64,000 nt of DNA from Adineta vaga (taxonomy: Eukaryota > Animalia > Rotifera): positions 13,640,001-13,704,000 of the forward strand of contig CP075492.1 of NCBI GenBank assembly GCA_021613535.1. The letters are read 5' to 3'. The position numbers and the translations under genes are program-made. Of this stretch, positions 17,306-57,473 are shown in pieces. The stretch's first letter is position 1. Every line of letters begins with the position of its first letter. The notes beneath the pieces are model-generated. The model saw only the letters and a list, made by a program, of their open reading frames with translations, searched no databases and was not told the origin of the DNA.

Positions 17306-18142
17306 ATTTTAGCGATCCTTCTCGCTGCGTGGTATGAGTTCAATATATTTGTCTCTCGAGCTAATAAATGGTTATCAGTTATTTCTACATCTGCACATTT
17401 TTATTCTACATTAAATACAATCGAAGCAATAACTCATACCCTTCCAATTGTGAACGGTAAAACAGAAAACCGATTTTTATTCACAATTTTACCCTCGCAA
17501 CTACTTGGCTATTAAAAGAAATACACGTCATATGCCAACCATAAGTTAAACACATATGAATACAAACAAAACGGCATAACCGCAAGCTTGACAGAATTTT
17601 TCGATATAATTTCAAGTCATCGCACATATACATTCGACATCCACCAATAACTGAGAAACGATATCTCCATGACGAACTATACAAACCCATCACTCCCAAA
17701 CAAACACTTATCACTAAATCCACCTAAAGCTTCAGGGAACCGACTTATACTTAGAAAATCAATTCAAATAAAAATTTATATGACGAAAACAAAACAAACA
17801 ACAAAGATAGTCACTCATGGATAAAAAGGTAGAAACAACACAACAAAGAATCACAAAAAAATATTCCAAAACTCTTAGAAAACTAAAGTTTCTCTCGAAC
17901 ACGTTCACCAACCGCTACCGTGAAAAATTCTCCACTAGTCGATCCTGTCGTCAGCATCCATACATCTCAAATAACAGTGATTCACAAGGGCGGAAAAGCG
18001 ATTTCTGATTTAAATGATTTAATTATGATTTTCAGAAAATTTGAAACAGTTTAGATCATGCAAAACTCATTCTTTCATATACTTTGAAGTGATTTATCTA
18101 TGACTTATACGTGATTAGAGTCAGCTTTTCCCCCTTGTTCAT

Positions 18143-20596
18143 TTATATGGTAGACGAGGTGGACGTAGTTGATGTTGATGAGGTTGTTGCAGTAGTTGAT
18201 GTGGATGTGGTGGATGAAGTTGATGTGGATGATGTCGAGGTTGTTTCAGTGGTTGTTGTTGATGTGGCAGAAGAGGTGGATGTAGTTGATGTTGATGACG
18301 TTGACGTTGTTGAGGTTGTTGAGATTGTTGATGTTGATGAGGTTGTTGAGGTAGTTGATGTTGATGATGTTGAACTTGTTGAGGTAGTTGATGTGGATGT
18401 AGTTGTCGAGGTGGATGATGTTGAGGTTGTTGCAGTGGTTGTCGTGGATGAGGTGGATGTAGTTGATGTGGATGTAGTTGTCGAGGTGGAGGTAGTTGAT
18501 GTTGATGAGGTTGAGGTTGTTGCAGTGGTTGTCGTGGATGAGGTGGATGTAGTTGATGTTGAACTTGTGGAGGTAGTTGATGTTGATGAGGTCGAGGTTG
18601 TTGAGGTAGTTGATGTGGATGTAGTTGTCGAGGTGGAGGTAGTTGATGTTGATGAGGTTGAGGTTGTTGCAGTGGTTGTCGTGGATGAGGTGGATGTAGT
18701 TGATGTTGAACTTGTGGAGGTAGTTGATGAGGTCGAGGTTGTTGCAGTGGTTGTCGTGGATGTGGTGGATGAGGTGGATGTAGTTGATGTTGAACTTGTG
18801 GAGGTAGTTGATGTGGATGAGGTTGAGGTTGTTGCAGTGGTTGTCGTGGATGAGGTGGATGTAGTTGATGTTGAACTTGTTGATGTAGTTGATGTGGATG
18901 TAGTTGTCGAGGTGGAGGTAGTTGATGTTGATAAGGTTGAGGTTGTTGCAGTGGTTGTCGCGGATGTGGTGGATGAGGTGGATGTAGTTGATGTTGATGA
19001 GGTCGAGGTTGTTGAGGTAGTTGATGTGGATGTAGTTGTCGAGGTGGAGGTAGTTGATGTTGATGTTGATGAGGTTGTTGAGGTTGTTTCAGTGGTTGTT
19101 GTTGATGTGGTAGAAGAGGTGGATGTAGTTGATGTTGATGATGTTGTCGAGGTTGAGGTAGTTGATGTTGATGAGGTTGAGGTTGTCGCAGTGGTTGTGG
19201 TGAGTGTGGTGAGCGAGGTGGAGGTATTTGATGTCGAGGTTGTCGCAGTGGTTGTGGTGAGTGTGGTGAGCGAGGTGGAGGTATTTGATGTCGAGGTTGT
19301 CGCAGTGGTTGTGGTGAATGTGGTGAGCGAGGTAGAGGTATTTGATGTCGAGGTTGTTGCAGTGGTAGTTGAGGATGTAGTTGTCGAGGTCGAAGTAGTG
19401 GATGTGGATGTGGATGATGTCGAGGTTGTAGCAGTGCTTGTTGTGGATGTGGTGGATGAGGTGGATGTAGTTGATGTGGATGAGGTTGAGGTTGCTATAG
19501 TGGTTGTTGTTGATGTGGTAGAAGAGGTGGATGTAGTTGATGTTGATGAAGTTGAAGTTGATGATGTCGAGCTTGTTGCAGTGCTTATTGAGGATGTAGT
19601 TGTCGAGGTGGAAGTAGTGGATGTGTATGATGTCGAGGTTGTAGCAGCGACTGTTGTGGATGTGGTAGAAGAGGTGGATGTAGTTGATATGGATGTGGTG
19701 GTCGAGGCGGAGGTTGAGGTTGCGGATATTGTAGACGAGATTGAGGTGGTTGATGTTGATGGATCTAATGATTAAGAAAATTCTCATTTCTATTGTGTGT
19801 GAGTTGTGAGTGAGATTTTGAAGATCGTATTTAAGAATATTTTCGGTTTTGGCGTGCATGATTTGAATTTCTGGCAAGGACGTGCTGTCGGAGGCAAGAA
19901 ATGGTGATATGTGATCACAAAATGGTAATGTGGTGTCTGCTTAGAAGATATGGTTGGTAAACGAAGGTTTTCTTAGGGAAAATTTGTAAATGGCAATCTG
20001 GTTGTGAAACTGAAAGCAACTTAGTGAGATTGTTAAAGGATTTTCGATATAAGCAGTCAGTGTCACGTTTGATTGCGTAGAAATAGTCTTATGATGATGC
20101 GAATGTTCGGAAAACGGTTAGTCTAGTTCAAAGTTAGTTGAAGTAGGATTATGTATTTTTCGATGGATGGGAATGGGAATGATTCAAATGTTTGATATAA
20201 GTTTTACAGTTATTCTAGTTTATTTTCGTTTGAATGAAAGGAAAGTTGATACTGACCGGTTTGTATTAGTGTTGAAGTGATGATGGTGATTGTAGTCGGA
20301 TCGGCTGGTGTTAGCATACTGTTGATTGAATTGGAGAGATTAGTGAACAGTTGACAACTCGCGGTAGATTGCTGAAATGTTGCTACTTGGCATTGCTGTT
20401 GAAGTAAGCATTTCATTTGACATACGCGAAAGTTGTATGCAGATACTATCGCATATGGTGGACAAGTCGTAGTTGCACATTGTAGTTGCCATCCAATTTT
20501 TATAGTCAATCTGCTTGCGCGACTATCCGGTGCAACAATTAGTGGAAAATAAAGAGAAAGAATAAAGACGAAAAATGCTTTCGTGGTCATTTTCAT
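18143..20596 (-). CDS. Secreted mucin-like protein: signal peptide + Apple/PAN domain + about 540-aa Ser/Thr-rich tail, 2 exons
   Basis: Exon 1 20257..20596 has the PAN-like Cys pattern (CQMKCL...CQVATF...CQLF); intron 19765..20256; exon 2 19764..18143 reads (D)PSTSTTS... to TAA in frame. Confidence 0.85.
18146..19760. repeat. Low-complexity coding tandem repeat (Thr/Ser codons) with higher-order units
   Basis: Recurrent gtagttgatgttgatgaggttgaggttgttgcagtggttgtc blocks; three ~57-nt near-identical units at 19180-19360. Confidence 0.9.
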
Positions 20597-21011: not shown

Positions 21012-22573
21012 TTAGGATTGACATTGATTCAAAAGAATACCAATAGTTGTGTTTACCGTATTTGTTACGGCAAGATCTTTCCTACCATCATTATTAAAAT
21101 CACCAGAAATAAGTCCATAGGGAAAAGAATTAGTAGTAAAGAGTGTTTCTGATGAAAAAGTGCCAGAACCTAAATTAAGAAATACACTAATATGTGCACT
21201 ATCCGTATTTGTAAGAACCAGATCTTTTCGATAATCATTATTAAAATCAATAGCAACAATTAACCATGGTGATGAACTCATTGATAAGACTATAATGGTT
21301 GCGAAATTACCATCACCAAACCCAATAAGAATGCTAATCGACTGACTACCAAAATTAGCTATTGCAAGATCTGTTCGATTATCTTCATCAAAATCAGCAA
21401 TTGCAATTGAAACTGGAACGGTTCCAACTGGAAATATTGTTTGATTTGCAAAATTTCCATTTCCTTGATTAAGAAATATACTTATTGTATTATTACCAGT
21501 ATTAGTAACAATAAGATCAATTTGATTATCATTATTAAAATCTCCTAAATCAATGGCATGTGGTACAGCATCCGTTGACAATGTTTTCAATGTAGAAAAA
21601 TTTCCATTACCATTTCCAAGATACACACCAATCTGATTATTTCCTTGAATAACAATCGCAATATCAGATAAACCATCTTTATTAAAGTCGCCAACTGCAA
21701 TGCCACTTAGAAAGAAACCGACTAAAATCGTTGTTTGCAATGAAAACTGACCATTTCCATCGCCAAATAATAATCCAATACTATCGTTTCCAAGATTAGT
21801 AACAACAATATCTAATCGATTGTCATTATTAAAATCACCGACAACAATCCCTTCGGGATTAGATCCAGTTGGATATGTTCTTTGAGTAGCAAAAGTTCCA
21901 TTTCCATTGTTAAGAAATATACTGACAGTATTATCATTTTTATTGGTAACAACGAGATCTTCTTGATTATCCGCATTAAAATCACCCACACCCACATATT
22001 GTGGACTGCTACCAGTTGTATACGTTAACATCGATGCAAATGACAATTGACATGGTACTAAATGAAAGACAATGATCTATATGAAGTTTTCCAAGATTTG
22101 AATTTACCTATTGTTGGACACAATATCGTCCATAATAATGGTAAGCATATTGCTTTAGGTGAACAACATGAATTGATGACGCAGACTGATGTGTTTGATG
22201 TACATGTATTTGTCGAAGTATTACAAAATTCTAAAATTCCACAAAGACTTCCCGGTGCACAATACGTTCGATTATCAATTGTACGATAAATATAACAATA
22301 TGTCGGAGATGGACGACAATTATCAGATTGATTCGAACATTGTGAAAGAAAACAATTTGTTAGAGGATCTTGTGCTGAATGTGAAGAATTAGAAAGAATA
22401 TAATCGATATTATGATTCTCTCGTTGACAAGTATTATTAGATGTTTGACCTGAAAAATGAACAAAAAAAAGATTATTCTCTACAACAGTGAAATGAACTA
22501 TACCTGTCATCATTTTTAAATGAATTAACAATACAACTGTAAGCGTAACTCTGTATTTTATCATATTCATCAT
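21012..22573 (-). CDS. Secreted FG-GAP/VCBS-repeat beta-propeller protein with an N-terminal Cys-rich domain, 3 exons
   Basis: Seven GDFNxDxxxDL(A/V)V...G.GNG.F repeats; Cys-rich segment C..SVCVINSCC; phase-1 introns join the ORFs. Confidence 0.88.
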
Positions 22574-25703: not shown

Positions 25704-25767
25704 TCTTGAGGTTTTAGGTCTCGTTGAGAGTATAGTGTTTCATCCACCCTCACCCACACCCTCAAGA
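25704..25767 (-). repeat. Telomere-repeat hairpin element, copy 1
   Basis: TCTTGAGG...CCTCAAGA terminal inverted repeat; minus strand reads cttgagggtgtgggtgagggtgg...ctatactctc...cctcaag. Confidence 0.75.
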
Positions 25768-34387: not shown

Positions 34388-34818
34388 CAACGATCATTTC
34401 TAATCTAGATCATATGTTGTTGTTTTATTGTTTCGTTTTTTCTTCATTTGTCGCTTCTTAAAAACTACAGTTTTTTTTACAGAAATAAATGCATTAATAA
34501 CATAAGAATATAGCTTGAAATTAATTTTATCCTGTATATGATCACATATGTATATTTATTCAACAAAAAATATCAGTAATTATACCAGCTCTTATTCGAT
34601 CATATGATCGACGAATGACATTAATTTAATTTAATGAATTACATGCTGTTTATTTTAGAATTTGGGACAGAAATAGAACTTTGAAATATTCTTTACAATT
34701 TACTGTCTTCCTGTGATGGGCTCATTTCCCATTAAAATTTGATAATGATGTAGAAAATAAGGCGATCATTTGTATTTTCGCAAATACTCGTTGACTTCAA
34801 CTTCATTTGAACATTATC

Positions 34819-35790
34819 ATGCTGAAACAAACTTTCTCACCTATGTCAGTTATAATTCAATCGATTGAAACAAATTTATGTCGATATATCGGCCCATTTT
34901 TACTCTTTATCGGTACAATCGGTTGTCTCTTGAACATTCTTGTATTTTCTCGAAAAAGTCTCCGAAAAAATCCATGTTCATTTTATCTCATTGCATATAA
35001 TATTGCCGATCTATTATATATCTATTGTGCATTATTATTTCTAATCATCAGTATCGGATATCAAATCGATCCAACTACAGTTAATTTAATCTTCTGTCGT
35101 TTACGTCTGTATACTGCACTTTTATTTCATGGTTTAAGTCAATTTTATTTAATTTTGGCTTCAATCGATCGAGTGTTAATCACTTCACGTCATGCTTTAA
35201 CACGCCGTCGAAGTAATCGTCGGCTAGCATTCATCTCTATTGCCATTGGAACACTCTTTTGGATAATATTTCACAGTCATACTTTAATTTTTAGCGATAT
35301 TATCGAAATGGCTCCACATTCTTTTGTGTGTTTTTTTCGACTAGGCATCGAAGCTGATTTCGTTGACTATTATACAATTATTAAAGAAACATTGATGCTT
35401 TCACTAATGATCATCTGTGGATTATGTTCGATTCATAATATTCGAAGTATACATCATATTCAAGTTGTTCCCAAAGAATTGATAAGACGACAAATTCCTT
35501 TGAATGAAAATCATCATTCTTCTTCGTCAAAAGATAGACAATTGGTGTTCATGTTAATTGGAGATATAACGACGTATACTTTCTTTAGTTTTATATTTGG
35601 CATTTTTGTTCTGTACACACAAATTACGAAAAACGATAGCAAAAAATTTGAACATATTCAAATTGAAAATAGTTTAAGAAATATTTGTTTATTTAGTATT
35701 AATATTCCATGTTGTATCAGTTGTTATGTAAATCTTTTCATATCGAAAACATTTCGAAATGAAATGAAAAAGATCTTTGTACGAAACTAA
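34819..35790 (+). CDS. Orphan class A GPCR (intronless)
   Basis: LRKNPCSFYL, CRLR.Y, LASIDR, KDRQL and SKTFRNE motifs; seven TM segments. Confidence 0.88.
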   Translation: MLKQTFSPMSVIIQSIETNLCRYIGPFLLFIGTIGCLLNILVFSRKSLRKNPCSFYLIAYNIADLLYIYCALLFLIISIGYQIDPTTVNLIFCRLRLYTALLFHGLSQFYLILASIDRVLITSRHALTRRRSNRRLAFISIAIGTLFWIIFHSHTLIFSDIIEMAPHSFVCFFRLGIEADFVDYYTIIKETLMLSLMIICGLCSIHNIRSIHHIQVVPKELIRRQIPLNENHHSSSSKDRQLVFMLIGDITTYTFFSFIFGIFVLYTQITKNDSKKFEHIQIENSLRNICLFSINIPCCISCYVNLFISKTFRNEMKKIFVRN

Positions 35791-36970
35791 ATAGTTATAC
35801 ATTCTACTGATTGTCAAATGAATATTCCGATAAGTTAAATAGGCGAACAATGTCATTATGAGTATTGGACCGATACTTAGAAAATAAAGTAGATAGTTTA
35901 TTTGTTATCGGTGCAATATTGAAGAATATCAATGATACAATACTGTGAAGACACCAGATAAGAATGACTATGACCAATAACACCTATAATAAGGAGAAAT
36001 AAACCAACATAGACAGTAATTTATTGAGTAAAATACCATGACATAACTTAAGTTCATTTGTAAGAGATGAATAGTCTCTAGAAACGATCATTCATGGAAA
36101 AATTTGTGATAAAAAACAAAAAAGCTGTCAGTGAATAATTATAGACATATAGTCGATATACTATATTCTTTTCATTCTTACTAACAGTATCTTAAAAATT
36201 TATTTATTTTATTTTTCAAAGAACAAATAACCGGAGGTAATATACGTCAACGACGTAATCTACATACAACACACTGTTAGTGAATCATTATCTAGTGCTT
36301 TTCTTTGAGTAAATCTGATTAATGTTCTTACTTGCACTTGTTCTATGTATCAGAAGTTTTGAATACAGCAATATAAGTTGTTATGATGCATATAATTTTG
36401 AGAAAAGTGCTCACATCAACGCCGATATGTACATCCCTTGATAAACATTATTTCCCGGTTGAACGTAATTTTCCCTCTTGATGTGTTGTTACGATATTCT
36501 AATCTGTAAAAAATGAGTAATTATCAATATACATTCATCAAGCTACACAAATTGAGACTCTATTACCATCTTAATGAGTTTACAGTTGACTGTTTTCTAT
36601 TGTAATTAGCATTTACAGTCAAAAATTCCAAACGTCACGAATCAATCATATAAAGAAATTCGGAGTTCGTTCATAACGTGAATTCTTCACTAAATACTCT
36701 GAAGTATTTGCATATATATATTTATCAAATGTTTTATTAAATCTACTTACAGATATTACTATTGACTTTGTTTCACGATCATTTTTCATCTGAATATTTT
36801 GATCTATGTTGATAATATGAGATCAAACTAGTAAGGAGATAACGTACATGGTTACATCTTTTATGAGGCACTCAATTTCATTTAATTGTGATACAGACCC
36901 TTTGTAATATACGAAAATCATACTTAAAAATAAGAAATATGCATTGTTCGGACGATATATGTTAATCTAC

Positions 36971-36984
36971 TATATAAAGATAAG
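36971..36984 (+). promoter_or_regulatory. TATA + GATAAG promoter of first-exon cassette A
   Basis: TATATAAAGATAAG, conserved with the cassette B promoter. Confidence 0.55.
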
Positions 36985-37116
36985 AACACAATCAAAAACC
37001 TATTTTCATTCTTGAATACATTACTTACAGTTTACGATTATTCCGATAGTGAAAGGTAAATATATATATGTATATGATTTGCATTAAAAAAAAGCGAAAC
37101 AATCTGTACAAAAATT

Positions 37117-37387
37117 ATGGATAACAATCCCTGGGAATATGTGGGTAAAAGTGAATATAATAAACGTCCTAGACGTTTCAGTCGTCGGTGCATTATCATC
37201 TTTTGTATTGCTCTTTTCGTCTTGACAATTGTTGCCGTTGGTCTTGCTCTTCTTATAAAGTTTGTCATTTTGAAACGACCACAACCGACAGACTACTATA
37301 ATACAACGACATCATCATCATTCGAAACCTCTAGCAATATAAACATATCAACGGAAATAACAATAAGCATCACTACAGTGCAACCAG
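37117..37387 (+). CDS. Variable first coding exon A: cytoplasmic tail + type II TM + Thr/Ser stalk
   Basis: MDNNPWEYV...RRFSRRC-TM-stalk; ends CCA G|GTAATT (phase-1 donor). Confidence 0.7.
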
Positions 37388-37777
37388 GTAATTTTCCACG
37401 TATTGTCTAAGTTTCTGATCACATTCAGTAAGGCTTTGCTCCTATTTTCGAACAACCAATATGTATATCTATCAAAAAAAGTTCGTGACTTTTCATTTAT
37501 TGAGAAAGAAATCTTTACGCTGTTCGTGTCATTGTGTGTATGTTAAGAGAGAGACTAAAATCGATCAATTGTCCAACTATAGTTACTAGGGTAGGCAGAT
37601 TTTTAGATATTCTTAATCAACTGTGAGAAGTTTCACTATGAAAAATACCACAATATATCTTGTGGTATTTGTATTTATGACAGATCATATTAAGATAAAG
37701 AAGCAGAAAGTAGGAGCATTATAAATGGCAAGTATATATACATATATGAGTTGTGTGGATGATATGCCAAATATATC

Positions 37778-37790
37778 ATATAAAGATAAG
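37778..37790 (+). promoter_or_regulatory. TATA + GATAAG promoter of first-exon cassette B
   Basis: ATATAAAGATAAG followed by sequence homologous to the cassette A 5' UTR. Confidence 0.55.
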
Positions 37791-37924
37791 AGCACACTAA
37801 TACTTATTTTCATTCACGTGATTATTACTTACATTTTATGATTATTCTGGTAGTAAAGAGGTGAATAAAACGAAGTTTCGATAAATCACCTATAGTGACG
37901 AAAAACTGAATCCCTAGCGAACAA

Positions 37925-38234
37925 ATGAACAATAATGTATGGCAATACGTAGATAATAATAAAGATGAAAAGCAGCCTAGGCGTCTGAGTCGTCGTTGTA
38001 TAATAGTTATTTGTTTTGTCTTTATCATCTTGGTAATTGTTGCAGTTATTCTTGCTATTTTATTAGCACCATCCAACTCAACTACCACACCTCCTTCGAT
38101 CGTCAACAACAACGAGACAATAACAGGCAGTACATTAATAGACACAACAACAGTAATTGTTACAGGGTCAACTTATACATCATTTGACACATCAATGACT
38201 TCAATTACAACAGAGATTACGACTGAAAAACCAG
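37925..38234 (+). CDS. Variable first coding exon B (paralog of A)
   Basis: MNNNVWQYV...RRLSRRC-TM-stalk; ends CCA G|GTAACC (phase-1 donor). Confidence 0.7.
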
Positions 38235-38791
38235 GTAACCTTAAAATTCATGCGTTTTTTAGTCTTATTTCTTGAGGGTTTCTTTTTGTTGAAAGAATGA
38301 CTTCAATTAAGGTGAACAAAAATTGTAGATTTAAGTTGAAGTTTTCTCTTAATAGACAAACTTTATGTACCGATTGTGGGTCTATGCCATTAAAAAAACT
38401 AAGATCGTATCTGTATTGTTCTATAATTAGAATAGCGAAAGTTTTAATTAAATCTTCAACACATGTTTCTAAAGGTATATCAACTTACTAAGTGATTATA
38501 ACTTTTATTGCATTGTTCTTTATATGAATTACCGATTCGAGTAGATTGTATTAGAATTATAAGCATAATATTCTATGAAAGCTTATGATACGTATGCGAA
38601 TGAGACTTCTAATTAATACAAGAGATCTCGAAGATAAAATATCGTTTATGGCTGCAAATAGAGTAATATTTTTTTTCTTACGTTCGTATTAACGTCATTT
38701 GTATCTTATCAGTATTATTTTAGATAAAAATAAGCAGCAGGTAGTTTCACATCGTAGTTTGTCGATCTTTCATTGTGAGTTGACGCTTTTT

Positions 38792-38993
38792 ATGGAGCAA
38801 ATTGTATATATGGATGACATGAATTCTGGATCTCATACAGAAAGTGATGAAGGATATAAACGTCGATGGTGTAATCGTTGGATAATCTTGATCGTTCTGA
38901 TAATTTTCCTAATCGTGGCACTAGTTATCACTTTAGTGGTGATATTTGTCCTTCCAAAACAGTCTTCTTCCAATCCACCCTCTTCTAAGCCAA
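38792..38993 (+). CDS. Variable first coding exon C (diverged, short stalk)
   Basis: ...KRRWCNRW-TM-PKQSSSNPPSSKP; ends CCA A|GTGAGC (phase-1 donor). Confidence 0.6.
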
Positions 38994-39408
38994 GTGAGCT
39001 ATGCGAGATACCGCTGTTTTTCGAATCAGCTTTCTTATTTTTCTACTCAACAGAATATCGAACGATCTGTTAAAATATGTTACGATTACACATATACTTT
39101 TTCGACTTTTCTCAAGAAATGAAAATACAGAATGAAAACTGCTCTGACTTCGTGAGAAATTTTATAGTAAACTTTTCAGAACTGACCATAGTTAGAACCT
39201 ATACTAATGATTCGATCAAATCACTATAAGTCTCAATAATCTTTAGCGTTTACTTGAAAATTATGCTGAGATTTGAGATTAATTTGATTCTATTTGAGCA
39301 AACTAATTTCAGTTACATACAAGTCTCCTGCTCGAAGTAACTGATATTCAGTTAGACAACACACACCATACTTTATTAAAAGAAATTTCTTGTTGAGAAT
39401 TCTTTTAG

Positions 39409-40409
39409 ATTGGATTAATGTCACAAATATGAGATATCCACGATGTCATCACACCGCGACTTTTATTTCTAATTCAACAGTATTAATCGCTGGTGGATAT
39501 TATAACGGAGATGCATTGCAAAGCACTGAATTATATCTCAATTCCAGTGAACGATGGATGCTTGTTGGAAACATGACTGATGGACGGTACGATCATACCA
39601 TGTCTCAACTAACAAATGGATCCATATTAGTAGTTGGTGGATATAATGGAAGAAGCGAGCTGAAAAGTGCTGAATTGTACGATCCATTAACAAGAAGCTG
39701 GACACGTGTCAATGATATGAATGTTGCACGGCATGGACATGCCACTTGTGTTTTAAATAATGGAAAAATATTAGTATCTGGTGGACTGAATAGTAACGGC
39801 ATATTGAATAGTTGTGAAATATATGATCCAAAAACAGGATTATGGACTAATACTGGCAAAATGACAAATAGTCGATATGCGCACACAGCAACTAAATTAG
39901 CAAATGGACGTGTATTAGTTGTTGGAGGATACGAAAATGACTCTCTGAATACTGCCGAATTATATGATCCAGCACGAGGAACATGGACACCAACCGGAAG
40001 TATGAACTATGCTCGAAATGAACATATTATTCTATTATTACCAAATGGATTCGTGTTAGTGATTGGAGGATTTAATGAGAAAGCTCTAGCTAGTGCTGAG
40101 TTGTATAATTCAACGGTAGGCACTTGGACAGCCATAGAAAATATGACTAGTGCACGTGATCAACATACAGCGTCACTATTAACAGACAATGTAGTGCTTG
40201 TGACTGGTGGACGCAATTATAGAGATGATGCGTTAAATAGTGCTGAACTATATGATTTATCAACAAGAAAATGGAGCATGATCGGAAATATGAGTAGAGA
40301 ACGTTACGGACATACAGCAACTGTTTTACCAAATGGACAGGTACTATTAGCTGGTGGATGTGACCGTAATAATAATGCTCTCATCGATGCTGAAATCTAT
40401 AATTCTTGA
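39409..40409 (+). CDS. Kelch / galactose-oxidase-type 7-bladed beta-propeller exon with no signal or anchor of its own
   Basis: Seven repeats of M..AR..HTA..L.NG.VLV.GG....L.SAELYDP..G.W; phase-1 acceptor ttcttttag|AT TGG; many N-x-S/T sequons. Confidence 0.9.
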
Positions 40410-40996
40410 CGGATATATTATAGTGATTGACAATATGTTTCTTTATTGAACATAATTTTCTCATTTGATACTCTCTATTATATTAGTCGAATACTTACAA
40501 TACAATGAAAATAAATTGTATAACTTTTGTATTTTTCGAAATTTTCCAGTTGTAGGGTGTGAATGCGGGTAAAGAGAAGATATACACCTATAACTTATAT
40601 ATAGAAATAAAACTTATTCTAAAATTTTCTAAATTGTTTTATTTAATTCAGTTCTTTCATCACATTAGAACATAAACATGCGAGATTATCTTCAGTATAG
40701 GTGTACCAATGGTTCGAATATATAAAGTTAAATCCTCCCAATTTGGTATTCGACGAAGACGAGGTACAATTATATTGTTTTATTGTTCAGTACGATCATC
40801 ACATTTTGATAAAAAGCATTTTAAATGAAGTAGCATATCCTATAGAGAAATGTAGACATTATTTTTAAGACATTTTTGTTTAAAATCGTTATTACTCTGT
40901 TGTCAGCTGTTGATATAAAATCAGTAATGAATTCAACTTCAACGAGAAATGTCTGCAGTAGTTTAAAACGACTATCGAGTAAAATACGAATATCAT

Positions 40997-41063
40997 CTTG
41001 AGGGTGTGGTGTGGGTGTGGGTTAGGTATGGGTAAAGATTATAACCAAACCTATACCGTCAAG
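40997..41063 (+). repeat. Telomere-repeat hairpin element, copy 2
   Basis: CTTGAGGGTGTGGTGTGGGTGTGGG...CCTATACCGTCAAG with inverted ends. Confidence 0.7.
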
Positions 41064-41311
41064 TTCAACGTTTGACTCAATTGTGTCTATGTGAGTCAAA
41101 ATGATTCAAATCAAATTTTACACAAGCCTTTTTCTCTCGCACTTGAAAAGGAAAGAAAAAATAAAGAACACGTGTTATTCATTGCGGCAATTCTATTACT
41201 TCGAAACATTAGGCAATACTTATTCACTATCAAGTTTGTTTTCTCTAATGCAACTTTTCTCATTTAAATATATACGCAACTACAATTATTCTGAGATACA
41301 ATAAAATCAAA

Positions 41312-42604: not shown

Positions 42605-44647
42605 CTAACTTGATTTGGAAGATATTCGTTGAATATTTTTCTCATTTTGTACTAAATCAGCATCTGTTGTAGATAATATTTTACGATAGATCACATTTGC
42701 TTTCTTATAATATGATAAAGCTTCATTCCAATTCCGATTTTCATCATGAACAATAGCTATATGGTTAAGTGTCGTTGCAGTATCAATATGTTCTGCAGGA
42801 AGTGCTATTTTATAGATTTTCAATGCTAGATTAAAATGTTCTAAAGCTCGATTAGATTCGCCAAGCCGTTGATAGATAGTTCCAATATTATAATGTGAAG
42901 CTCCTATATCATAATGATTGCCTGTAAGACAATTCATTCGAATATTTAAGGCAGTTTCATAATATTTCAATGCATCAGAATATTTCTTCTGTCGTTGAAA
43001 GATACCACCAATATTATTCCAGCACATTGCTACATGAACATGATTATCACCGTGTGCTCGTCGAAATATTGATAAGGCGTTGCTATAAGCTTCTAATGCT
43101 CTTTCGAAATCACCAATAGTTTGATAGATATTTCCAATGCTATTATAGGTATTTGCGATATTCGGATGATTTGATTGGTAAGTTTTCTTATCAATCTCAA
43201 GTGACTTATTAAAGAATTTGAGACTGGCATCATGATTACCCTTCTTTTCTTCTAAACTACCGAGTGAAAAATAACATGTCGATATATGATGAGAATCATT
43301 CGATCGAAGACTATCGTCGAGACAACGTCGATAATATCTTTCGGCATCAGTATATTTTCCCATTCGTTGTAGTACAGAACCTAATCGAATGAGATCTAAT
43401 TCTATTTGCTTATCTTCCGATTTCATTGTTTGGAAAATTTCTTTTAATTCATGATTTTCATCACCACATAAAGTTAATCTGATTGTACACAATCCGTTTC
43501 GATCATAAAGAATATTACCAATTCGAAAGATTGATCCTAACATAAATAAAACTTCTGCTTCTTTTCTATACTCACTCAATTCACTTATATTAGCAAAGGG
43601 TTTAATTCCTGGCAAACGTGGATCAGCATAAATTTCGAATAAGATTCGTTCGAGTCCATTTTTCTGTGTAACAAATGAAAAAGCTAAATCTCGATTGAGA
43701 CTAGTCGACAGAAATGAATTAATTGAAATCAAGCGTCCTTTCGATTGTTCTAAATATTCAAGTTCATTAGGCCACAGAAATTGACCTCGATAGACCGTCA
43801 CTGGAGATGAACATCGATGTCTTTTTAATTTTTCTTCCAAGTCACGAATTAAAAAACGAAATAAATAAATCGAATGAATATCTTGTGTACGAAGTGCTCG
43901 ATTTAACATTCGATAAACAAATGAATGCCGTGTGTACCAATAAACTGCTCGATCTTTGACATATGTATCATGAAATTCTTGCGTAAGTTTTAATTCATCT
44001 TTTTCATTTTGTAATCGTTGTTGACATTGAAATATTAATTCTTTGAAATCAGCAGAATCAGATGGAATTCCAAGAAGACAATCGATTAATAATTGAGAAT
44101 GAACGAATTCTCCATTCAATCCAGTTGCTAATTTCTCTTTATCAGCTTTTTCATCGAATGTAGCAAATGCCAATGCGTCATCATTTTCTGTAATCTGTTC
44201 TTTCGATTGATCACATCGAATTTGAGAGATTAATTCACCTAATTCTACGGCTAAACCTCGTACCTATAAATATAAATCGTTTTATAATAAGAAAAGAAAA
44301 CGAATAAAAACCTTTGGATATTTTTTTGCCCATTCATTGTTTTTTTTATTACCACAATAAACATAAATAGCTTGAATTCTTGGATTTTTTTCGATTTGAG
44401 GAACAATAGTATAGCCTAATGAACCACTTACAATAAGAATAACTCGTTCATTATCCTTTAATAATTTTATATATTCTTGACAATCAACTTCTCGATCAAA
44501 TGCCTTGAAATGCTGGAGAAGAGATTTCAATTGATGTGTAGCATCGATACTTTCTTGTTTGGTTTTAACAGTTGCATCGAGCCAAATTAGAATCGATGCT
44601 TCAATATGATCTACATTCGATGTCAATCGTCTTTGCACACCTCCCAT
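42605..44647 (-). CDS. Receiver-like + R-S-E class mono-ADP-ribosyltransferase + TPR-repeat protein (intact), 2 exons
   Basis: LIWLD...LIVSG...IYVYC N-terminal domain; intron 44264..44311; WYT, VYRGQ, FLSTS and EAEVLF motifs; about six kinesin-light-chain-like TPRs. Confidence 0.9.
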
Positions 44648-52546: not shown

Positions 52547-52594
52547 GGGTGTGGGTGTGGTTCCTATACTCTCACCCACACCCACACCCACACC
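52547..52594 (+). repeat. Telomere-repeat hairpin element, copy 3 (best-preserved core)
   Basis: GGGTGTGGGTGTGG-TTCCTATACTCT-CACCCACACCCACACCCACACC. Confidence 0.8.
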
Positions 52595-55067: not shown

Positions 55068-55135
55068 GGGTGTGGGTGTTGGTTGGAACCGTGGATCTTC
55101 CTATTCTATATTCACACACACAGCCACAGCCTTCA
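55068..55135 (+). repeat. Telomere-repeat hairpin element, copy 4 (degenerate)
   Basis: gggtgtgggtgttgg...ttcctattctatattcacacacacagccacagccttca. Confidence 0.55.
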
Positions 55136-57401: not shown

Positions 57402-57473
57402 GGGTGTGAATGTGAGTGTGAGTGTGGTTCCTGTTCTCTCACCAACACCGACACCCACACCCACATCCTTCAA
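57402..57473 (+). repeat. Telomere-repeat hairpin element, copy 5
   Basis: gggtgtgaatgtgagtgtgagtgtgg-TTCCTGTTCTCT-caccaacaccgacacccacacccacatccttcaa. Confidence 0.75.

Follow-up and report, generated by a model that had tools for sequence, protein, structure and literature searches.

The genome of the bdelloid rotifer Adineta vaga contains a locus at which three alternative membrane-anchor first exons appear to feed a single constant exon for a Kelch propeller. The locus occupies positions 36900-40600 of the 64-kb stretch of contig CP075492.1 that we analysed (the window, to which all coordinates refer unless stated otherwise), in a genome of 100.8 Mb, six contigs and ~31% GC. The three exons, which we call cassettes A, B and C, lie in tandem on the forward strand, and each ends in a phase-1 donor that is in frame with the one conserved acceptor of the Kelch exon, at 39409. 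The most likely working mode of this arrangement is ordinary alternative promoter, or first-exon, use. Transcription from each promoter and three splice joins to 39409 are what we infer from the patterns described below, and the chances that at least two of the cassettes are productively joined to the Kelch exon seem to us evenly balanced. All database and genome searches were run exon by exon.

Cassette A (37117-37387, + strand) is a coding exon of 271 nt for a basic tail, one transmembrane (TM) helix and a 43-aa Ser/Thr stalk, and closes with the phase-1 donor CCAG/GTAATT. Cassette B (37925-38234, +; 310 nt) encodes a tail, a TM helix and a Ser/Thr stalk of 56 aa, with the phase-1 donor CCAG/GTAACC. 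In cassette C (38792-38993, +; 202 nt) an acidic/basic tail and a TM helix are followed by a stalk of just 16 aa and the phase-1 donor CCAA/GTGAGC. The constant exon (39409-40409, +) begins at the phase-1 acceptor TTCTTTTAG/AT TGG, and its frame stays open from 39409 to the stop at 40407-40409, a 332-aa exon. On direct reading the lengths of A, B and C are all 1 mod 3, so that every join to 39409 is in frame, and the codon split by the junction becomes Asp for A or B and Asn for C. A preliminary description of this locus, drawn up from the sequence alone, had given these coordinates, phases and splice dinucleotides, and we find all of them to be correct.

A single, strongly hydrophobic helix is present in each cassette (Kyte-Doolittle 3.1-3.8 over 19 aa). 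The 13-15 residues that precede it include 7 Lys/Arg in A, 6 in B and 4 in C, and 3, 0 and 2, respectively, follow it. With no cleavable signal peptide, a single helix and a more positive N-terminal side, all three are predicted to be type II single-pass anchors. Ser and Thr make up 31-46% of their stalks, compared with 14% when local non-coding DNA is translated. No cassette-like open reading frame (ORF) is found on the strand opposite the array, and upstream of 20 paralogous loci such ORFs number 0-1 per 5 kb.

The constant exon is a clear Kelch propeller. Pfam recognizes seven stretches of Kelch_4 (PF13418), and Kelch_1 (PF01344) scores 193 bits against a cut-off of 20.1; the seven blades are each 47-48 aa long and the propeller carries nine N-glycosylation sequons. 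Pfam finds nothing besides Kelch in this exon and nothing significant in cassettes A, B and C, and a hydrophobic N-terminus, when looked for in the Kelch exon, is not there. Searches with 20 family propellers (tblastn) against 35800-39408 and 40410-41300 recover no Kelch remnant, the best match (E 0.27) lying in a Thr-rich stalk. The claims that no cassette has an ectodomain of its own, and that the only downstream ectodomain is a 7-Kelch exon without a signal sequence, are upheld. Nor did a search among the downstream in-frame acceptors turn up another coding partner for the cassette donors beyond the Kelch frame: acceptors at 39409 and 39352 lead into that same frame, and the longest of the other in-frame extensions fall within cassettes B and C.

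This exon belongs to a large family. A search of the genome with it gives at least 245 matches, of which the best is only 53% identical; we surveyed the 20 best loci at the sequence level and further loci by coordinates only. Members of the family usually consist of a single exon for a type II membrane anchor, followed by a phase-1 intron and the Kelch exon. A phase-1 polypyrimidine-AG directly precedes the Trp codon with which the propeller opens (YYYTAG/nA-TGG) in 19 of the 20 best paralogs as well as at this locus, and a gene model of A. steineri (P0095, NCBI) has a type II helix, a Thr-rich stalk and a 375-nt phase-1 intron at the Gly/Trp junction. The conservation of this junction in the paralogs and in A. 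steineri indicates that the 39409 acceptor is genuine by homology. The paralogs L024 and L037 have the same exon-1 end, CCAG/GTAA, as A and B. When cassette A or a profile of seven cassette sequences is the query, similar anchor exons are retrieved directly upstream of many Kelch exons, at least 25 of the matches adjoining the Kelch exons listed. Judged by these features A, B and C are canonical first exons of the family. Other paralogs have different N-terminal modules, e.g. NHL-like or Cys-rich ones.

Could the Kelch exon instead be a stand-alone intronless gene that starts at ATG 39431 and encodes a cytosolic propeller, the cassettes being unrelated to it? There is indeed an in-frame ATG seven codons into the exon. 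However, that Met is part of a blade motif, GNM, which is repeated in all paralogs, the whole family conserves the polypyrimidine-AG and Trp codon that lie upstream of it, and the A. steineri model is spliced at this very point. We find such a gene hardly credible.

Evidence on whether A and B are alive comes from a comparison of the two. They arose long ago by a tandem duplication, with a period of ~806 nt and a synonymous divergence (dS) of ~1, and their identity changes from segment to segment: 79% in the promoter and leader, 55% in the leader intron, 69% in the tail and TM helix, 49% in the stalk and ~50% after the donor. In the tail and TM helix 97 of 141 nt are identical (P ~5e-6 to 6e-4 against a background of ~50-55%). 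Over these 47 codons the ratio of nonsynonymous to synonymous divergence (dN/dS) is 0.31, with a dS of 0.97, and identity is 85% at second codon positions but 60-62% at first and third positions. The two exons differ in length by 39 nt (13 codons), a multiple of three despite many indels in the stalk, so the frame has been kept through several indels. The stalks have stayed Ser/Thr-rich, though their sequences have diverged to background and no longer align.

These figures bear on the idea of A and B as pseudo-exons, dead relics left from the 5′ ends of genes, with neither transcription nor translation. The expanded family does contain many partial duplications, and in-frame stops occur in several of its paralogs. 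On the other hand, when we simulated neutral decay (0.2-0.3 substitutions per site, for a pair at dS ~1), the ATG, the open frame (90-103 codons) and the GT were all kept in 0.4-2.5% of simulations per copy, and dead relics do not account for a dN/dS of 0.31, conserved second positions or a promoter block far above background. We therefore regard them as very improbable. Together with the retained CCAG/GTAA donor, the same three features argue that A and B are live first exons. We conclude from the pattern of substitutions that they are coding exons under constraint, apparently translated and served by functional promoters, and that their donors are probably functional too.

The promoters deserve a closer description. 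The core promoter and non-coding leader exon of A (36964-37056, +) contain TATAAAG at 36973-36979 and an initiator-like TCATTC at 37006-37011, with the donor AAAG/GTAAAT after 37056. Those of B (37770-37860, +) have TATAAAG at 37779-37785, TCATTC at 37810-37815 and the donor AGAG/GTGAAT after 37860. The two blocks are identical at 72 of 91 positions, which against the same ~50-55% background corresponds to a P of ~1e-8 to 1e-6. Within the window, exact copies of the 14-mer ATATAAAGATAAGA exist only at 36972 and 37778, and a genome search with the TATA/leader block of A found no copy other than at this locus. Each leader is followed by a putative intron in the 5′ untranslated region (UTR): 37057-37094 (+; 38 nt, GT..AG) for A and 37861-37917 (+; 57 nt) for B, where the acceptor sets the exon start at 37918. 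The two introns have conserved AG/GTRAAT donors and AG/CGAA acceptors in common, and their interiors, at 55% identity, are at background. The preliminary description had credited A and B with duplicated promoters and apparent 5′ UTR introns. The duplication of the blocks is confirmed by the 14-mer and the block identity, and the introns are plausible given the conserved splice contexts.

Cassette C is equipped differently. The TATAAAGATAAG/leader-intron block of A and B is not present before it, so that A and B each have a conserved TATA box, initiator and leader block and C has a TATA-like stretch only, GATAAAAATAAG, in an upstream block at 38697-38744 (+). With an AG in the same block (exon start 38724), a phase-1 donor would be joined in frame with C. 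Motifs of the GATA-factor type, AGATAA, recur across the units, at 36973-36985 and 37779-37791 in the TATA blocks and at 37690-37700 and 38721-38730 in the upstream blocks of B and C. Their recurrence might hint at common tissue-specific control.

How did the array arise? Upstream of the TATA box of B, by 65-110 nt, lies a block (37667-37713, +) that is homologous to the block before C: its local alignment to 38697-38744 has z=7.5, which 0 of 500 shuffles reach. The positional counterpart in unit A (36901-36936, +; TTTGTAAT...TAAAAATAAGAA) aligns to the B block in register, which is not significant when taken alone (38 of 500 shuffles), and has TAAAAATAAG exactly in common with the block of C. 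Since the C block is homologous to that of B, the three cassettes are local copies of one unit of ~0.8 kb. The spacings are similar, with 808 nt from ATG to ATG between A and B and 867 nt between B and C. From each donor to the following unit there are 330-480 nt, much like the 415 nt that separate C from the Kelch exon. The best genome match of cassette C is cassette B, albeit a weak one (E 0.003), and the post-donor segments of A, B and C have no similarity to each other above shuffles. Tandem copying of one gene's 5′ module is the best explanation of the array.

Other origins were considered and set aside. An origin from three genes that lost their 3′ exons is unsupported, with no Kelch remnant in the tblastn searches above (best E 0.27). 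We also dropped a duplicated unit that included the acceptor, as the upstream blocks of B and C are not significantly similar to the Kelch acceptor region. A 26-nt match between 36798 and 39410 was taken as chance because tblastn gave no Kelch match there.

That said, a number of observations weigh against three working joins. The first is intron length. Splicing to 39409 needs introns of 2021 nt for A, 1174 nt for B and 415 nt for C, and the introns of A. vaga are mostly 30-100 nt, with a mean of 108 (PMC5916493). The second is competition from nearer acceptors. The 5′ UTR acceptor of B (exon start 37918) could capture the A donor, leading to a stop after 3 codons, and the acceptor before C (exon start 38724) opens a frame into C for any phase-1 donor. 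The C donor itself can form a compact, well-formed intron of 60 nt (38994-39053, +) that ends at TTTTTCTACTCAACAG/AA, with an exon start at 39054 and a frame that ends after 6 codons. Third, ATTAAA occurs at 38389, 38447 and 39375, the first two being 110-210 nt after the stop reached when B is read through its donor, which makes local termination possible. Fourth, a search of 5.8 billion proteins with the Kelch exon and with its first 100 aa yielded nothing above 49% identity, and no product of this gene. Finally, the arrangement stands by itself. Of 70 genome-wide matches to the cassette profile, only those at this locus include more than one within 5 kb, and the locus is unique by DNA in the genome, with no ohnolog or allele, i.e. 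no syntenic partner, that could be named; the flanking gene, which resembles leucine-rich repeat (LRR) genes, has no close copy there either. A second cassette was sought at the 20 paralogous loci and at the A. steineri locus and none was found. The three-cassette array is a single local event and not a design principle of the family.

Some of these points can be read as signs that only C is a first exon of the Kelch gene, with A and B being separate small genes for a tail, a TM helix and a mucin-like stalk (97 and 116 aa) that are read through the donor or spliced locally. The ORFs of A and B close 7-13 codons after the GT, poly(A)-type signals (ATTAAA or AATAAA) follow both, at 37864 for A and at 38389 and 38447 for B, and long introns are a minority class in A. 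vaga (PMC5916493). Selection on the tail, the TM helix and the stalk composition fits stand-alone proteins equally well. What small genes fail to explain is why CCAG/GTAA and phase 1 have been kept in A and B while the neighbouring stalk diverged to background. Their read-through tails (GNFPRIV, GNLKIHAFFSLIS) are not conserved, and in every other family member examined such an exon is the anchor of a Kelch exon. Downstream signals also speak for read-through to the Kelch exon: between 37959 and 40509 (2.55 kb) the + strand has no AATAAA, where ~4.7 are expected (P ~0.009), and the first one after 37958, at 40510-40515 (+), is 100 nt past the Kelch stop. On balance we rate separate small genes as rather unlikely.

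The nearer acceptors raise another possibility, that A and B are transcribed but mostly non-productive, the A donor joining 37918, with its early stop, or the donors of A or B joining 38724 to give a two-helix product. The promoters would then act by interference or decay. Both acceptors exist, the one at 38724 opens a frame that runs through C, and B is preceded by an acceptor, unlike the variable exons of protocadherins or UGT1A. However, a purely regulatory role has no need of purifying selection on the coding sequence of A and B or of a retained phase, and the two-helix product would have its propeller, with nine N-glycosylation sequons, in the cytoplasm, which would set it apart from the other family members. 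A mostly non-productive role for A and B is thus improbable in our estimation.

We return to alternative first exons as the best explanation. In this model the 5′ module of one TM-Kelch gene was copied in tandem, with the outcome of three first exons before a single Kelch exon. The module, of ~0.8 kb, comprises the upstream block, the promoter, the exon for tail, TM helix and stalk, and the greater part of intron 1. Selection has maintained A and B as translated exons, each with a TATA/initiator promoter of its own and an intact phase-1 donor of the family type. A transcript starting at A, B or C would splice its donor to the conserved 39409 acceptor, and the same extracellular 7-blade propeller would be displayed on a stalk of ~43, 56 or 16 residues, the cytoplasmic tail being of either of two kinds. 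The scheme in the preliminary description, in which promoter choice could display one propeller on different stalks and tails, is thus supported in part: A and B are coding first exons under selection, with conserved core promoters, all three cassettes have the phase-1 exon-1 end of the family, and the 39409 acceptor is conserved family-wide; the three joins themselves are putative.

If the joins are true, a lineage-specific, receptor-like family built on a bacterial-looking Kelch domain gains isoforms by duplicating only its promoter-plus-anchor module. The locus would, in addition, offer a clean test of long-intron, cap-proximal donor choice where introns of 30-100 nt prevail in the genome. 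The creation of alternative first exons by tandem duplication is a well-known mechanism and this locus is a one-off case, so the general significance is limited. For annotators there is a practical warning, as gene finders are likely to miss A and B or to call them orphan mini-genes.

The rest of the window has features of its own. Directly upstream of the cassette array is an intronless ORF (34807-35790, +) that resembles G protein-coupled receptors (GPCR-like, i.e. seven-TM-receptor-like), with a family of at least 125 genome matches, the best at 52% identity. Interstitial runs of TGTGGG, which we take to be the bdelloid telomere repeat, are found at 21985-21996, 25747-25764, 41010-41021, 52550-52592, 55071-55082 and 57448-57465. 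A 12-mer of this repeat has 10 matches in the window where 0.01 are expected, and one of the runs comes ~600 nt after the Kelch stop. In bdelloids, telomere-repeat scars of healed ends like these are a feature of regions with many foreign or expanded genes. An imperfect tandem repeat of 1.7 kb (18111-19877; 43-45% GC, GC skew ~+0.75) has two putative ORFs, one on the + strand for 554 aa rich in Val/Asp/Glu and one on the - strand for a 262-aa repeat rich in His/Asn/Ile. A 522-aa ORF at 42605-44173 (-) looks by eye like an ADP-ribosyltransferase in its N-terminal part and like TPR repeats in its C-terminal part.

The closest points of comparison are the single-cassette TM-Kelch members of the family (L024, L030, L036 and L037, and P0095 of A. 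steineri). They have the same basic tail, single helix and Ser/Thr stalk, and the same phase-1 intron before the Trp codon of a 7-blade Kelch exon of ~330 aa. They differ in having one cassette each, and their introns measure 54-375 nt, or 1733 nt in the case of L024, whose first intron owes its length to a Tc1/mariner-like transposase ORF within it. That ORF (L024:3610-4809, -; contig ~18928300-18929500) has 399 aa and appears by eye to be intact. The stalk of the L024 gene is a long, near-perfect (IGTTTTTTTT)n repeat.

Beyond the rotifers, secreted bacterial Kelch proteins from metagenomes and metagenome-assembled genomes (e.g. P0001, P0009 and P0019) are 36-47% identical to the A. vaga protein over the whole propeller, with E down to 6e-140, and have the same blade motif, AELYDP..G.W...G.M...R..HTA..L.NG.VLV.GG. 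The four that we read begin with a hydrophobic, signal-like N-terminus rather than a type II anchor, and the bacterial genes are intronless. A bacterial origin of the rotifer TM-Kelch family is plausible on these similarities. Kelch proteins of determined structure (the designed SAKe, IVNS1ABP, KLHL20, KLHL12 and KEAP1) are clear homologs as well (E 2e-74 to 1e-31). The natural ones are cytosolic BTB-Kelch adaptors, whereas the A. vaga propeller is predicted to be extracellular, on a membrane stalk.

In their layout of variable first exons and a constant exon, clustered protocadherins and UGT1A are the familiar counterparts, and this likeness had been pointed out in the preliminary description. 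The layout does agree: a tandem array of first exons that arose by local duplication, of which A and B at least appear to have their own promoter, a 5′ splice site of the same phase on every exon, and one downstream exon with the only conserved acceptor. The likeness fails in that B and possibly C are preceded by acceptors (37918; 38724), and in that the variable part is here the tail, TM helix and stalk, with the binding domain constant, which is the reverse of those systems. There are also just three units, in an arrangement found once in the A. vaga genome. The analogy is weakened further by the tails of A and B, which are near-duplicates, so that diversity would reside mainly in stalk length. 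It is a tentative suggestion, and one we think somewhat doubtful, that use of the three promoters is regulated or mutually exclusive. The propeller, probably bacterial in ancestry, would then be presented at three heights above the membrane and on two kinds of cytoplasmic tail, and the locus would be, in an animal with introns that are normally shorter than 100 nt, a minimal, independently evolved counterpart of protocadherins and UGT1A, with a variable anchor and a constant head.

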